This document shows, piece after piece, positions 5,403 to 39,578 of a DNA stretch of 64,000 nucleotides. Both the position numbers and the translations under genes were made by a program. Below the pieces are notes generated by a model that ran no database searches, was not told where the DNA came from, and worked only from the letters and a program-made list of their open reading frames with translations. Position 1 is the stretch's first letter. Each line of letters opens with the position of its first letter. The stretch is taken from sequence record MW879341.1; one strand, 5' to 3'.

Positions 5403-5420
5403 CTCTACACCGGTGTAGAG
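5403..5420. promoter_or_regulatory. perfect 18-bp palindrome in a divergent intergenic region
   Basis: CTCTACACCGGTGTAGAG is its own reverse complement. Confidence 0.5.
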
Positions 5421-33602: not shown

Positions 33603-34952
33603 ATGAGCTATGAATCTTATCTGGACAGTGAACTGAAACTGGCCGGTATCGAACTGGAATCTGGTGAGCGTGAGCGTCTGGTCAATATCTTCAAAATTAT
33701 CGACGAGCAGGGCCACAGTGGCGGTAGTATCAGTATCCTGCTACCTATCATGCGCAACGAACTGGAGCGTGACATTAAAGCGCCTCAGCCTTCTGACGCA
33801 CCTGAGATCTTCAATGCGGACACCTTCGCTGAAGGGTTGTCTAAACCAGTCTTCCAGGAACTGAACGGTCTGACGCTTAACCGCGCCATCGTGGTTGCAG
33901 AGTTGGCATTGAAAGCTGTTGGCTTCATTCCGTTTACCCCACTGACCGGTGAAGACGATGAGTGGTTTGAACCATTCCACGACACCCTGCAAAGCAAACG
34001 CATGGGTGCGGTATTCAAAGACCCTGAAACTGGTAAAGCATACTGGCTGGATGCCAACCGCCTGAACTACCCCTCCGCGTGGAATGATCATGCTACCTGG
34101 TCTGCATACGGTCGTCGTGGTTTCCTGAAGTTCCCATTCGACCCGAGTGTAGGAACTACTGACTACTACTACACCACTGAGTCCCTGCGTCATCACATCG
34201 TCGTTGACCCGAACCCGAATCGTGCGTTCTTGACTCAGGCTATGTTGACCACAGCTGCCGGTGGCGCAGCTAACGACGTACTGCTCTCACCTGTACTGGA
34301 GACGGTGGGTCCTGACGTTGGTAAGTCGCTGATTGCCGCCTTCACTGAGTTCTGGGGTGCGGTTATCGATTCGGAAGACCTGGCTAACGCTAAGTCATTC
34401 CCATACAAAGCACACCACGTTGCACTGAACGGACTGCGTCACGCTACCGAGTATGAAGTCGATTCGGATAAACCTAACAATGGTAAGCCGGACAACGTAA
34501 CTGTGTTTGGTCTGAACGTACCATATGAAGCCATCCCGCATCTGGCACGTATGGTAAGTTTCTTACCTGAATCCACCTACGTCAAAGAAGGTCGTCTGGT
34601 TCACCCGTATGACGATAATCTGACCGGTCAATTCGTTACAGTACCTGTCTTCACTGTGAGCGAAGACAGTCAGCGTTGGGAGCAACTGCCTGACCTGGTA
34701 TCCGTTATCTGGAATGACTCGCTGGTGCTGACCGGTAAAGTCAACATCGTCACTGCCGATCGTGGCGTTGAGATCGTTTCTGGTGATGAGGATGATTGGT
34801 TGTGGCGTTTCCGCGAACGTCATGGTATCGCACACCCAGAACGTAAGTCTACGTTTGACGGTGTTCTGAACGAAGCGCAGGCAGTTGCCTCCTCCAATGA
34901 TAACCTGACCGACCCGGCAGACGTTATCGACCCTGACGCTCCAACAGCATAA
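33603..34952 (+). CDS. hypothetical protein with GHSGxS and PLTGEDDEW motifs
   Basis: 449 aa; motifs recalled from a widespread uncharacterised phage family. Confidence 0.75.
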   Translation: MSYESYLDSELKLAGIELESGERERLVNIFKIIDEQGHSGGSISILLPIMRNELERDIKAPQPSDAPEIFNADTFAEGLSKPVFQELNGLTLNRAIVVAELALKAVGFIPFTPLTGEDDEWFEPFHDTLQSKRMGAVFKDPETGKAYWLDANRLNYPSAWNDHATWSAYGRRGFLKFPFDPSVGTTDYYYTTESLRHHIVVDPNPNRAFLTQAMLTTAAGGAANDVLLSPVLETVGPDVGKSLIAAFTEFWGAVIDSEDLANAKSFPYKAHHVALNGLRHATEYEVDSDKPNNGKPDNVTVFGLNVPYEAIPHLARMVSFLPESTYVKEGRLVHPYDDNLTGQFVTVPVFTVSEDSQRWEQLPDLVSVIWNDSLVLTGKVNIVTADRGVEIVSGDEDDWLWRFRERHGIAHPERKSTFDGVLNEAQAVASSNDNLTDPADVIDPDAPTA

Positions 34953-34990
34953 ACCCCCACGACCCAGGGCACTAGCCTTGGGTCTTTTAT
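34947..34990 (+). terminator. hairpin with a GCATAAA 5' arm
   Basis: GCATAAA...GACCCAGGGC-ACTA-GCCTTGGGTC-TTTTAT. Confidence 0.65.
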
Positions 34991-35004
34991 TAGGATTGAA
35001 AAGC

Positions 35005-35679
35005 ATGGTACTGGTAGAAATTCCAAAAGATAATAATAGCATTGAGGTAGACGATACTTTGATGGCTCGTTACGGTGACGCAGTCCGTTTCGTAATCGAG
35101 AACAATGATTCTAAGGGCGCATATCACACTACCCATCATCTGTTGGGTGTGGCAACCATTCTGTGCTCTATGTTCAATCGCCTCTCTCCTGACGCATTGA
35201 CGCAAGTACAACGTGATACTTTGGTCTATGCGGCGCTGTTCCACGATTTCGATCATCCCGGTACTGGCGATGACGTTCTGAACATCAAGACTACCATCGA
35301 TGCCCTGTATGCAAAAGATGCCTGGTCTGTCATTCCTAAAGAGTTATCACTCGATGTGTATAACGCCATCAATGAGACACTCTGGCCGGCCCCTGCTGAT
35401 TTAGTAATCAGTGATGTTAACTGGTATCTCCGTGACGCCGATCAACTCTACGCGACCGTTTACCTGACGCCTGAGTTAAGTCGTGAGTTGTTTAAAGAAC
35501 TCGGCCCTCGTTTTAATGTACCTACGTACAGCCAGTGGTTATTCCGTAACGTTGAGTACGTTATGTCACTGCCTGGTGCATTGCACTACGAGTGTGCGAA
35601 GTACGTCTACGACTGTCACTTACCGAAGTCATTGAAAATCCATTTCGCTGAATTGTATAAGCAAATCGATGGAGAGTAA
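35005..35679 (+). CDS. HD-domain phosphohydrolase with class I cyclic-nucleotide PDE-like motifs
   Basis: YHTTHH, LFHDFDHPG and RDAD motifs. Confidence 0.75.
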   Translation: MVLVEIPKDNNSIEVDDTLMARYGDAVRFVIENNDSKGAYHTTHHLLGVATILCSMFNRLSPDALTQVQRDTLVYAALFHDFDHPGTGDDVLNIKTTIDALYAKDAWSVIPKELSLDVYNAINETLWPAPADLVISDVNWYLRDADQLYATVYLTPELSRELFKELGPRFNVPTYSQWLFRNVEYVMSLPGALHYECAKYVYDCHLPKSLKIHFAELYKQIDGE

Positions 35680-35682
35680 CAA

Positions 35683-36168
35683 ATGTACGACGTTAGTCTG
35701 CGGTTGGATACCAGTAGTAGTACTTGCCCGGGTCTGATTGCTACAGTCAAGACGATCACGGCAGCACAGAGTCTGAACGATACCATGCGGAGTCAACTTA
35801 TCCGCACGTTCAATCCTGCTACCAACCCCGTTATCTTCAAAGCAGTAGAAAACAACGGTCAGGAAGTACCGGCTGATTTCCTTTGTGTGCCGCTCTATGA
35901 CGGGACGTCTATGTCACTGGTAACCTTGGATGCCTCGGGTTGCTTTGAGCGCATACAGAAGACCACAGACATGATTCTGAACTGTAGCGAGCGTTACCCG
36001 ATTACCATAGACCCTGAAATCGATGCAGTGTCTCGTGCTAATCTCTGTGCTCTCTATTACGGTGAGCCTGGCTTGGCTTGGGTGACGTGTATGGAGGCTG
36101 GTATTCTAACAGCCGAAGACGTTCAGGGTATGTGTACAACTGCCGGCGTTCCAAAAACCTGGTATTAA
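35683..36168 (+). CDS. hypothetical protein
   Basis: 161 aa, GGAG RBS. Confidence 0.7.
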   Translation: MYDVSLRLDTSSSTCPGLIATVKTITAAQSLNDTMRSQLIRTFNPATNPVIFKAVENNGQEVPADFLCVPLYDGTSMSLVTLDASGCFERIQKTTDMILNCSERYPITIDPEIDAVSRANLCALYYGEPGLAWVTCMEAGILTAEDVQGMCTTAGVPKTWY

Positions 36169-36172
36169 TTTG

Positions 36173-36200
36173 GGTAGGGCTTCGGCTCTACCTTTTATGC
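36173..36200 (+). terminator. UUCG hairpin followed by TTTTATGC
   Basis: GGTAGGGC-TTCG-GCTCTACC-TTTTATGC. Confidence 0.7.
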
Positions 36201-36217
36201 TGTTAAGGATAAGAGAT

Positions 36218-37042
36218 ATGTCAGAAAAGATTCCATTGGTGTTGTTCTCAGGTGGTCTGGATTCAACGGTGATGTTGTAGAAATACCTCCAAACTACACC
36301 TGTTGATGTTCTGTATGCGGATGGTGGTCAACACCCACTCAAGATCGAGAAAGAGTTAGAGTGCCGTAAACGCACAATCGAGTTCTTGAACCGCGTGATG
36401 CCTTATAAAGTCCAGACTGACCTTCGTACGGATAATAACGTTTCCTTCGCAAGTGGTCCTGGTAATAAGTACTCACAGCCAATGGCCTGGATGGTGGCTG
36501 CACTATCCGTATTAGATCCAGCCCGACACAAATCGCTGTCAGTTGGGTATGTAGGTGATGATGGTGGTTTCCTTCGCTACATCCCTAACCTCTACAGTGC
36601 CTGGGAGAATATGCAGATTCTCAGTAAGGTCGGTGAACCCGTACCGCTGGTATTCCCCGTCGTCGACAATCGTAAAGTTGACTTGTTGGGTGCAATGCCC
36701 ACTGAACTGTTAGACAGTATCTGGGTGTGTGAGATGCCTAAGTCTGAAGACGGTGTTGTACGTGCCTGTAAGAAATGTACACCGTGTAAGTTAGGTGCGA
36801 GTGTCCTTCATCAGTTCGAGCAGGAGAATGGCTACAGCATCTATAGTAAGCGCTTAGTGAAGCAACTTCGTACTGCTGAGGAAGACAGCATTCGTCCTTG
36901 GAAAGGTCGTGACCTATTCGCACACCAGACTCGTCGGGTAGCAGGGGATTGGACTAAGGACTCAAGTGATCCATGGTACTACCGTCACCCTAAGAAGGCT
37001 GACGAAGAAGAACCCGAATTGAAGCTCACCGATAGTAATTAA
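36218..37042 (+). pseudogene. QueC-like PP-loop ATPase interrupted by an in-frame TAG at codon 21
   Basis: ATG 36218 reads MSEKIPLVLFSGGLDSTVML, TAG at 36278-36280, then the same frame continues into track ORF 36386..37042, which has the Zn motif CEMP...CKKCTPC. Confidence 0.8.
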
Positions 37043-37095
37043 ATACTGAGAGCGGGGATATTGTGTATCCCCCTTAACTACAAGGTTTAACAGCA

Positions 37096-38238
37096 ATGAC
37101 TATTCTTTCCAACCACGAGGTTCGCGTCATTTGTTTGGCGAATGGATTCAAAACCAAAGAGCAGGCTGACGGGGCTATGGATTTAAACCCCTACGTCTTT
37201 AGTGCTGCTAACGCGTTAGTAGAAGCTGCTCTGGCTAAGACCTTGGTTGTATCGCGCCCTGGTATTCATGAGGTCCTTAAACGTTCCCCAAGTAGCGTGC
37301 TGACCTACGGTGACTATAACAAACCTTGCGCACAGTACGTCGAAGACTTCGCTCGTCTGGAGCGCCTGTGTGACGCACTGCAAGCATCAATCGTCAGTCG
37401 TCAGATCAACTCAACCAAACTCTGGAATGTCGTGGTTGTTGATAAGCACAGCGCACCATTGGCCGGCAGCTTGAATGTCCCACTGGGTGTTGCTATGGGT
37501 TCACTGACTGCTGAAATCGGTATATTGGTGGCAGAGGCTCAACGTGTTCCTAACGAACCGTTCTTCAAAGAGCCTGTGTTCACCGACATGCGTCACTTTA
37601 CCGTTGAGTTAAATGAACTCACACAGATGGCGCGTTTGGCTCAGACTGAAATCAAAATCAATAACCACCTTCCTGATGACAAGTTCACAGTGACTGTGGC
37701 TGGTGATGACGTGAAAGGTGTGAGTGTGTGTGACACGATTAACCGTGCTATCGCCATCGTTAAAATCCGTCTGGGCTACCGTGACCCGAATGCCTTAATT
37801 GGCGTTATCGCTGAAACCTGTCGTCGTCGTGGATACGGACTCGTCGTATCTGAAGCGAACCCACCGGTCAGTACCTATCGTATCGACGTCAACGGTGTAT
37901 CTGTTCAGTGTATCGGTGGCGAGTTAGAAACACAACGTGCTGCGTTGTTAGTGGCTAACTTGGCTAACTTCGACTTCGTAGCAAATGGTGAGTGCGAGCA
38001 GAAGCCAATTGAGGGTCTGGGTAAATACTTCATCACTCCTGTGATCGATGACGATAGCGGTCATCACAAAGCGTGGTGGGAGATTGTCCAGATTGCTGAG
38101 TCGTTGGATATACCGGTTAAGTATACCAAAGGACCTCAGACCTCCGTAGTTCACGTAAGCGACATCACGTTGACTGGTCCGACTGCTCATGTGTTAGCCG
38201 CCACGCAGGCTGTGTTAATCAGGAGTATTAAATGCTAG
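37096..38238 (+). CDS. hypothetical protein
   Basis: 380 aa; N-terminal FKxKEQxDGxMDLNPYV motif. Confidence 0.75.
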   Translation: MTILSNHEVRVICLANGFKTKEQADGAMDLNPYVFSAANALVEAALAKTLVVSRPGIHEVLKRSPSSVLTYGDYNKPCAQYVEDFARLERLCDALQASIVSRQINSTKLWNVVVVDKHSAPLAGSLNVPLGVAMGSLTAEIGILVAEAQRVPNEPFFKEPVFTDMRHFTVELNELTQMARLAQTEIKINNHLPDDKFTVTVAGDDVKGVSVCDTINRAIAIVKIRLGYRDPNALIGVIAETCRRRGYGLVVSEANPPVSTYRIDVNGVSVQCIGGELETQRAALLVANLANFDFVANGECEQKPIEGLGKYFITPVIDDDSGHHKAWWEIVQIAESLDIPVKYTKGPQTSVVHVSDITLTGPTAHVLAATQAVLIRSIKC

Positions 38239-39578
38239 ACCTCTTTCTATCCTGGTATCAGACTCTACTGGACTCAGCTAAACAATGGCCTGCCGCTCAA
38301 GCTGCCATCGTTACAACGAGTTCTGTAGCCGCCGCTGGTGCTGTGGGTTTCTTACTCTGGAAACTCCCGTCCCGCCTGATTCATTTCTTTAAGACCCAAT
38401 GTACCACAAAGCTGAGTTTCTCTACAGCATCGACATCGTGGTCAAGCTATAACAGCACGCAGTACATCGCGTTCTTACGTTGGTTCTCGAAGAACAGTTG
38501 GTTCAACTGGAGTCGTGTCATCACACTCGATGGTAATGATTCCAGTAACGGTGCAGTTGGTCCAGGTGTGGGCAATCACTTCTTCGTTTTTAAACGTAGA
38601 CTGTTTGTGTTCACCATCGCTGAAGATCAAGCCAACCAATCGGGTCAGGCAAAGTATCGTATTAGTATCACCACACTGGGACGTAGTAAAGGTCCTCTCT
38701 ATAAACTGATGTCTGAGTTTATGGAGAAAGATACCCACGGTGAGATGATTACGGTCTTTGAGAATAGTAAGTCCGATTGGAACTGGGTTGCTCAAACTCA
38801 CAAACGTGACCTCAGTACGGTTATCTATCCTCCGAACATTCAGGACGAACTGATCGACCCTATCTTAAAGTTCACTGAATCCCGTGACTGGTATCTGAAG
38901 CGTGGATTGAACTATAAGGTAGCCATCTTACTATATGGTCCTCCCGGTACGGGTAAGAGTTCTTTGGCGTTGGCGATTGCCAGCCTCTTAGGTCGCAACC
39001 TCTATATCTTGAAGCCTGACGGTAGCTGCTCTTACAACGCATTGTTCCAAGGGGCAAAGGGTGGTTTGGTGTTGATGGAAGATATCGACACCTATGGCAT
39101 CTCTCGTTCTCGCGACAACAACGGTACTGATGCCAAACTGGGTGTTGTTAAGTTGAAGGAGTCGAAGAAAGAAGAGGTTGAGGCTATACCGGTTGCTCCG
39201 GGCGGTGCGTCTACCCACGACTCGCTCTCTGAGTATATGTCAGGTAGTTTGTCCGAACTGTTAAATGGTTTAGACGGCGTGTTGGGGTTAGATGATGTAG
39301 TTGTGCTGATGACAGCTAACCACCCAGAGGTTTTAGACGAAGCACTGATTCGCGATGGTCGCGTAGACCTACGTGTTGAGGTTCCGTATCTGGGTAACGC
39401 TGAGATTCACCGCTATATCCAAATGATGTTCCCTAACGAGCCGTACGACGCTACACGCGTCTTTGGGTCATTACCGGGAGCAACTGTACAGAAACAATTT
39501 AAACTCAATACAACGAGTTTGAGTGGGTTTGTTAACGCACTGCATAAAGAAGTAGAGAAAAGGGAAAAGGTAGCATAG
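38232..39578 (+). CDS. BCS1-like membrane-anchored AAA+ ATPase
   Basis: N-terminal TM, BCS1_N-like GxGxHFF...ITTLGR, WYxxRG...LLYGPPGTGKSS, MEDID, LLNGLDG, TANHPExLDxALIRDGRVD. Confidence 0.85.
   Translation: MLDLFLSWYQTLLDSAKQWPAAQAAIVTTSSVAAAGAVGFLLWKLPSRLIHFFKTQCTTKLSFSTASTSWSSYNSTQYIAFLRWFSKNSWFNWSRVITLDGNDSSNGAVGPGVGNHFFVFKRRLFVFTIAEDQANQSGQAKYRISITTLGRSKGPLYKLMSEFMEKDTHGEMITVFENSKSDWNWVAQTHKRDLSTVIYPPNIQDELIDPILKFTESRDWYLKRGLNYKVAILLYGPPGTGKSSLALAIASLLGRNLYILKPDGSCSYNALFQGAKGGLVLMEDIDTYGISRSRDNNGTDAKLGVVKLKESKKEEVEAIPVAPGGASTHDSLSEYMSGSLSELLNGLDGVLGLDDVVVLMTANHPEVLDEALIRDGRVDLRVEVPYLGNAEIHRYIQMMFPNEPYDATRVFGSLPGATVQKQFKLNTTSLSGFVNALHKEVEKREKVA

Follow-up and report, generated by a model that had tools for sequence, protein, structure and literature searches.

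A private amber codon interrupts the QueC-like gene of Erwinia phage pEa_SNUABM_54

The QueC-like gene of Erwinia phage pEa_SNUABM_54 is interrupted at codon 21 by an in-frame amber stop that is private to this phage, all close relatives having TGG (Trp) at that codon. The stop probably arose recently by nonsense mutation of TGG to TAG, which would leave a dispensable accessory gene with a null or near-null allele. We regard the case as a commonplace recent loss of function, or else as an error in the sequence, and not as recoding. The intact protein, known from the relatives, is probably not a preQ0 synthase.

The window, by which we mean the whole 64,000-nt stretch of DNA analyzed, is 100% identical to the record of pEa_SNUABM_54 (MW879341.1), a soil-derived jumbo phage of 272,635 bp isolated on the fire-blight bacterium Erwinia amylovora. 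Positions are given in window coordinates, obtained by subtracting 124,000 from the record coordinate (window 36279 is record 160279). The features of the locus are as follows.

36172..36193, + strand: terminator-like hairpin with a UUCG loop just 5' of the QueC-like gene, called by the terminator scan (9-pair stem with 5 G-C pairs, T-rich tail)
36205..36209, + strand: ribosome-binding site AAGGA, 8 nt ahead of the ATG, read from the sequence
36218-37042, + strand: QueC-like frame, 274 codons plus TAA, with one in-frame TAG
36218..36277, + strand: codons 1-20 of the gene, MSEKIPLVLFSGGLDSTVML, the same N-terminus as in the intact proteins P0001 and P0163
36248..36265, + strand: PP-loop ATP-binding motif SGGLDS, codons 11-16, aligning with SGGQDS of E. 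coli QueC
36278..36280, + strand: amber TAG, codon 21, TGG (Trp) in relatives; the changed base is 36279, A here and G in relatives
36281..37042, + strand: rest of the frame, codons 22-274 plus TAA, with the Rossmann-like core, the Zn-Cys region and a low-confidence C-terminal tail
36398..37042, + strand: GenBank CDS QXO10991.1 (the same as P0162), 214 aa, N-terminally truncated and without the PP-loop
36728..36787, + strand: Zn-binding cysteine cluster C171-x12-C184-x2-C187-x2-C190, a spacing variant of the QueC C(x)8CxxCxxC
37054..37072, + strand: hairpin GGGGATA-TTGTG-TATCCCC just past the stop codon, read from the sequence and not called by the terminator scan (no T run follows)

The two pieces on either side of the stop are one gene, as the first-pass annotation had proposed, because the Pfam QueC match (residues 7-58, E 6e-5, 23 bits against a cut-off of 22) crosses it. 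That annotation had also described a good ribosome-binding site, a PP-loop and a TAG at 36278-36280, and the sequence agrees on each point. Its 254 in-frame codons past the TAG should read 253 sense codons, all open, followed by TAA at 37040-37042. The Zn-Cys cluster with which it had the protein end is indeed present, but a low-confidence tail of 84 residues follows C190. Its remark that the shorter ORF lacks SGGLDS applies to the GenBank CDS, whose internal ATG (36398) has no Shine-Dalgarno-like sequence upstream. The same holds for the other two of the next in-frame starts past the TAG, TTG at 36386 and GTG at 36395; on an AlphaFold2 model all three fall downstream of the PP-loop and of the first helices, so that a restart product would lack the ATP site. 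The annotation of QXO10991.1 from the internal ATG conceals both the PP-loop and the amber codon, and the MW879341.1 entry should therefore be marked as an interrupted gene. For the phage itself the matter is mostly one of annotation, the deposited 214-aa CDS being a truncated call of a 274-codon gene with a private amber.

A search of 5.8 billion proteins retrieved four full-length relatives, P0001, P0002, P0003 and P0004, at 99%, 87%, 79% and 65% identity; column 21 is Trp in each of them and another residue in more distant members of the family. The 90% cluster of the closest relative holds three forms, namely the truncated GenBank product, P0001 (99%) and the intact P0163. The last of these is encoded on 17 Logan metagenome contigs of up to 246 kb and differs from the phage read-through translation only at W21 and at A128V. 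The DNA comparison likewise finds TGG in the relative where the phage has TAG. The base at 36279 is G in contigs from three runs of two studies, ~97.5% identical to the phage; two of these runs are food-metagenome samples of one study and the other is a gut metagenome, while a fourth compared run missed the site. By megablast and blastn no close relative was found among deposited phage genomes, and close relatives occur only in metagenome assemblies. The first-pass annotation had named an intact codon in relatives as one mark of a simple pseudogene, and this is what the orthologs carry. The ~97.5%-identical phages, compared over window positions 35700-37700 in runs X1, X3 and X5, thus come from food metagenomes and an animal-gut metagenome, and one food-metagenome contig reaches 246 kb, nearly genome length.

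Substitution patterns date the stop. Against the relative contig L004 (11 kb), the QueC-like gene shows 33 synonymous and 3 non-synonymous codon differences, the stop being one of the 3. In a three-way comparison, the changes private to the phage branch are 12 synonymous, 0 missense and 1 nonsense, which indicates purifying selection on the gene for essentially the whole of that branch; the stop is therefore either very recent or a base-call error. Had the second been the case, the phage would truly have TGG and the deposited A at 36279 would be a wrong consensus base. We consider such a sequencing or assembly error unlikely, and less likely than a recent null mutation, though several observations agree with it: the stop is the sole non-synonymous difference in the gene that is private to MW879341.1, all other assemblies have G at 36279, and none of the public sequencing runs searched holds the phage's own reads (the best run contained 0.51 of the sampled words). 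Against it, none of the 9 other genes that align gap-free to L004 has an internal stop, and the remaining three genes are intact CDSs in the annotation. Moreover, single-base substitution errors are rare in the high-coverage consensus of a cultured phage, whereas G-to-A is the commonest kind of spontaneous mutation. The base call is thus probably real, and the favored reading is a single recent G-to-A transition at 36279 that would have replaced the Trp21 codon (TGG) by an amber stop. Ribosomes beginning at the proper start would then terminate after 20 residues, and a product restarted downstream would be missing the first strand as well as the PP-loop and the initial helices. Since neither the truncated nor the restart product would have an ATP site, the allele would be null or at best strongly hypomorphic, and its product is presumably inactive. 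That the gene is dispensable on the laboratory host we infer solely from the fact that pEa_SNUABM_54 was isolated and propagated there and evidently grows.

The remaining explanations take the TAG as real and as decoded. Of the three options offered by the first-pass annotation, a recent nonsense mutation is thus favored, a sequencing error is less likely, and regulated readthrough is not supported: the stop is not conserved, no tRNA gene was found, and frames show no excess of openness past TAG. No tRNA genes were detected by ARAGORN in the window or with the Rfam tRNA model in the whole record, positive controls being included, so the genome-wide search for a suppressor tRNA that the first-pass annotation had suggested came back empty. 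It had judged genome-wide recoding unlikely from the frequency of TAG as a terminator, rightly so, for TAG terminates 13/91 long ORFs in the window and 4/27 annotated CDSs nearby. The open frame past TAG stops has a median of 6 codons and a maximum of 50, and is not longer than that past TAA or TGA. On stop usage and this frame-extension control we reject TAG recoding in pEa_SNUABM_54. Two further TAGs ahead of long frames, at 5416 and 18962, proved to be ordinary gene boundaries and not recoding sites. The idea that TAG is decoded by design in the phage or in the gene, through programmed recoding or reassignment, has in its favor only an in-frame stop inside a conserved gene; with many genes ending in TAG, frames that do not run on past other TAGs, no suppressor tRNA in the phage and TGG in the relatives, we give it next to no chance. 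Neither a stop conserved in relatives nor a decoding device, which would characterize programmed readthrough or recoding, was found. Leaky readthrough, in which near-cognate decoding or a host amber suppressor would supply enough full-length enzyme for the gene to stay useful, we hold to be highly improbable. The frame is perfectly preserved apart from the stop, and the base 3' of the stop is A; UAG followed by A is a context that permits some suppression in E. coli. The amber allele could accordingly yield some full-length protein. Yet basal UAG readthrough is usually well under 1%, the stop is kept in no relative, the phage has no tRNA gene, and frame preservation is equally expected under a very recent mutation.

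The intact protein belongs to phrog_1550, annotated "QueC-like", which the QueC-like gene matches over residues 4-203 (E 1.2e-24). Exhaustive phmmer with the intact relative retrieved 739 cluster representatives at E <= 0.001. Across a 118-sequence alignment, residues G13, D15, S16, E46, K153, C171, P174, C184, C187 and C190 are invariant, and P6, L7, L9, S11, G12, Y33, K42, Q87, W91, H104, Y111, D115, W129, P147, W169 and E172 are conserved in at least 90% of sequences. Pfam QueC (PF06508) is matched by 115/118 members. The phage copy, with X in place of the stop, scores 23 bits, narrowly above the gathering cut-off of 22, and P0001 scores 24.5 bits. The family has the N-terminal SGGxDS on a Rossmann-like fold that defines N-type ATP pyrophosphatases, and a four-cysteine Zn motif in the variant form C(x)12CxxCxxC, with 4/4 cysteines invariant and aligned to those of E. 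coli QueC. The AlphaFold2 model, built for the intact relative at 99% identity, has a pLDDT of 89.3 and is confident to about residue 225 but not in the tail. Foldseek ranks QueC (2pg3, 3bl5) and Cap9 (9nto_B) at the top for this model, and VIA-align gives Z scores of 16.3 for Cap9, 15.9 and 15.7 for QueC, 14.7 for E. amylovora YcfA and 13.1 for QatC; fold matches to QueC, Cap9, ThiI, TilS and LarE lie at Z 11-16. YcfA (PDB 9kq7), a 6-thioguanine enzyme of E. amylovora, is thus among the closer structural neighbors of the P0001 model, but its alignment ends before the Zn-Cys region, and the likeness is therefore probably generic PP-loop similarity.

The family looks virus-restricted and seems to occur mainly in jumbo phages. 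We found 32 loci of the phrog_1550 family in IMG/VR, mostly on contigs of 150-325 kb, and the nearest Atlas clusters are 67-100% viral. A pattern-based scan of species genomes, of limited sensitivity, confirmed no cellular homologs. Longer family members show no informative domain fusions. In the literature no function is assigned to phage singleton QueC-like proteins, and the PhageMaP mention concerns QatC only.

These proteins lack the substrate motifs of canonical QueC. The canonical signature comprises SGGxDS, YxQxHxxE, VPxRN, YPDC, K165 and C(x)8CxxCxxC, and assays found Y35, R99, Y131 and Y189 essential (Libby et al. 2026, PMC13329287). The family aligns to E. coli QueC (b0444) by hhalign with 97.2% probability and shares with it the PP-loop, the Lys (QueC K165, K153 in the family) and the four cysteines. 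In this profile alignment, which is not a superposed structure, QueC Y35 falls on Gly36 of the family, only the Gln of YxQxHxxE is kept, and the columns opposite VPGRN and YPDC are variable. Glu follows the first Zn cysteine where QueC has Tyr189, and the cysteine spacing is x12 as against x8. With the canonical QueC equivalog model TIGR00364, P0001 scores 16 bits and three other members 17-21 bits, against a cut-off of 150.3. Pathway partners are missing as well: FolE, QueD, QueE (radical SAM) and Tgt/DpdA, sought as PF01227, PF01242, PF04055 and PF01702 with positive controls, have no match in the whole 272,635-bp record. The first-pass annotation had noted the absence of queD, queE, folE and dpdA from the window, which extends to the complete phage, and the role apart from deazaguanine DNA modification that it suggested is plausible. 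The remodeled substrate pocket makes preQ0 synthesis unlikely.

The ~740 cluster representatives are routinely labeled "queuosine biosynthesis" or "7-cyano-7-deazaguanine synthase"; as the family fails the experimentally defined QueC signature and lacks pathway partners, the label is probably wrong. By analogy with other N-type ATP pyrophosphatases, the intact protein would most likely adenylate a carboxylate or carbonyl oxygen of its substrate and pass it to a nucleophile that displaces AMP, for a product other than preQ0. The four cysteines would build a structural Zn site, as in QueC, Cap9 and QatC. Our leading guess, held with low confidence, is a substrate of nucleobase or nucleotide type. 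Conjugation of a nucleobase to proteins is a recently demonstrated activity of the QueC fold in bacterial immunity, and type IV CBASS and Qat rely on 7-carboxy-7-deazaguanine-dependent protein modification. Given this activity of the fold and the remodeled pocket of the phage proteins, the phage branch is worth assaying. One idea, which we rate as a long shot, is that the virus-restricted singletons carry out undescribed chemistry on the QueC scaffold. This might be counter-defense, by interception of the 7-carboxy-7-deazaguanine-dependent protein modification of type IV CBASS and Qat, or nucleobase or nucleotide modification together with the HD, dCTP-deaminase-like and Tad3-like genes. If it were true, pEa_SNUABM_54 would be a ready-made natural knockout; with the TGG-carrying relatives it forms a natural mutant/wild-type pair for a test of function.

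The neighborhood gives a hint of nucleotide metabolism or counter-defense, and points to no defined system. Upstream of the QueC-like gene lie genes for a Tad3-domain protein, an HD/PDEase_I protein and a 161-aa protein without assignment; downstream follow a 380-aa protein without assignment and a BCS1-like AAA ATPase. The first of these (33603-34949, + strand, 449 aa) matches Pfam Tad3, a type I Thoeris inhibitor, over its first ~160 residues (E 7e-20, 71 bits against a cut-off of 27); its remaining ~290 residues are unassigned. The protein is conserved in close relatives and in one IMG/VR contig. The HD-domain protein (34978-35676, + strand) also scores above the Pfam threshold for PDEase_I, the 3'5'-cyclic nucleotide phosphodiesterase. 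The AAA ATPase (38232-39578, + strand) has BCS1_N, matches phrog_7485 (E 6e-118) and is homologous to the PHIKZ208-like gene of PA1C; BCS1-like AAA genes probably stand beside QueC-like genes through shared jumbo-phage synteny. No conserved operon partner of the QueC-like gene emerged from 8 loci, nor then from 41 loci drawn from annotated phages, Logan contigs and IMG/VR, many of them related to one another. Genes recurring in the 41 loci are QueC-like (40), BCS1-like AAA (10), HD (8), dCTP deaminase-like (7) and Tad3-like (6). In three divergent IMG/VR jumbo-phage contigs, the gene immediately downstream of the QueC-like one is dCTP deaminase-like (PF22769; L029:6022-6909, L035:6841-7629 and L036:6076-6987). 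Such a gene also occurs in PA1C, at a distance of 3 kb, and phiMAM1 encodes a dCMP deaminase with a distance of one gene; a DCD gene is absent from pEa_SNUABM_54.

Among known systems, canonical QueC (PDB 2pg3, 3bl5) shares the Rossmann-like fold at Z 15.7-15.9, and the best structural match is Cap9 of type IV CBASS (PDB 9nto_B; Z 16.3, 174 residues aligned). Two sequence features recur in both Cap9 and the family, a P(x)5K element and the 'CE' at the first Zn cysteine. Unlike Cap9, the phage gene has no CD-NTase or Cap10 nearby and is phage-encoded, not part of a defense island; the RN and YxDC motifs of Cap9 are absent from the family, and Cap9 has ~185 aa as against 274 aa here. The missing neighbors and motifs, together with the lack of a conserved partner in the 41 loci, exclude identity with Cap9. 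QatC of qatABCD likewise has a QueC-derived fold with a remodeled pocket (Z 13.1), but its N- and C-terminal extensions are absent from the phage protein. The QatC model NF041925 gives 11.7 bits against a cut-off of 280, and the PADLOC QatC model does not match P0001 and gives two other members only 15.3-15.7 bits (E ~1e-3). With model scores far below cut-off and no qatA, qatB or qatD neighbors, QatC identity is rejected too. Of the link to Qat and type IV CBASS that the first-pass annotation had raised, the shared fold thus stands and membership in either family does not.

As a mutation, the stop resembles those of classical phage amber mutants, which likewise differ by one G-to-A change from Trp to amber in a gene dispensable on the host. 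Unlike these, the pEa_SNUABM_54 stop would be spontaneous, in an environmental isolate or a laboratory stock, with no suppressor host known to be involved. As a protein, the nearest counterparts are the singleton QueC-like proteins of other phages, which probably form another N-type ATP pyrophosphatase subfamily, those of ECML-4 and Muddy having been flagged as singletons (Hutinet et al. 2019, PMC6884629). PA1C QBX32403.1, RSF1 ORF153, SP-15 gp114 and phiMAM1 MAM_175 belong to the same family (25-39% identity by tblastn), and like the pEa_SNUABM_54 gene they stand alone without other que/dpd genes, mostly in jumbo phages. Unlike them, the pEa_SNUABM_54 copy is amber-interrupted and belongs to a clade with an extra low-confidence C-terminal tail of ~70 residues.
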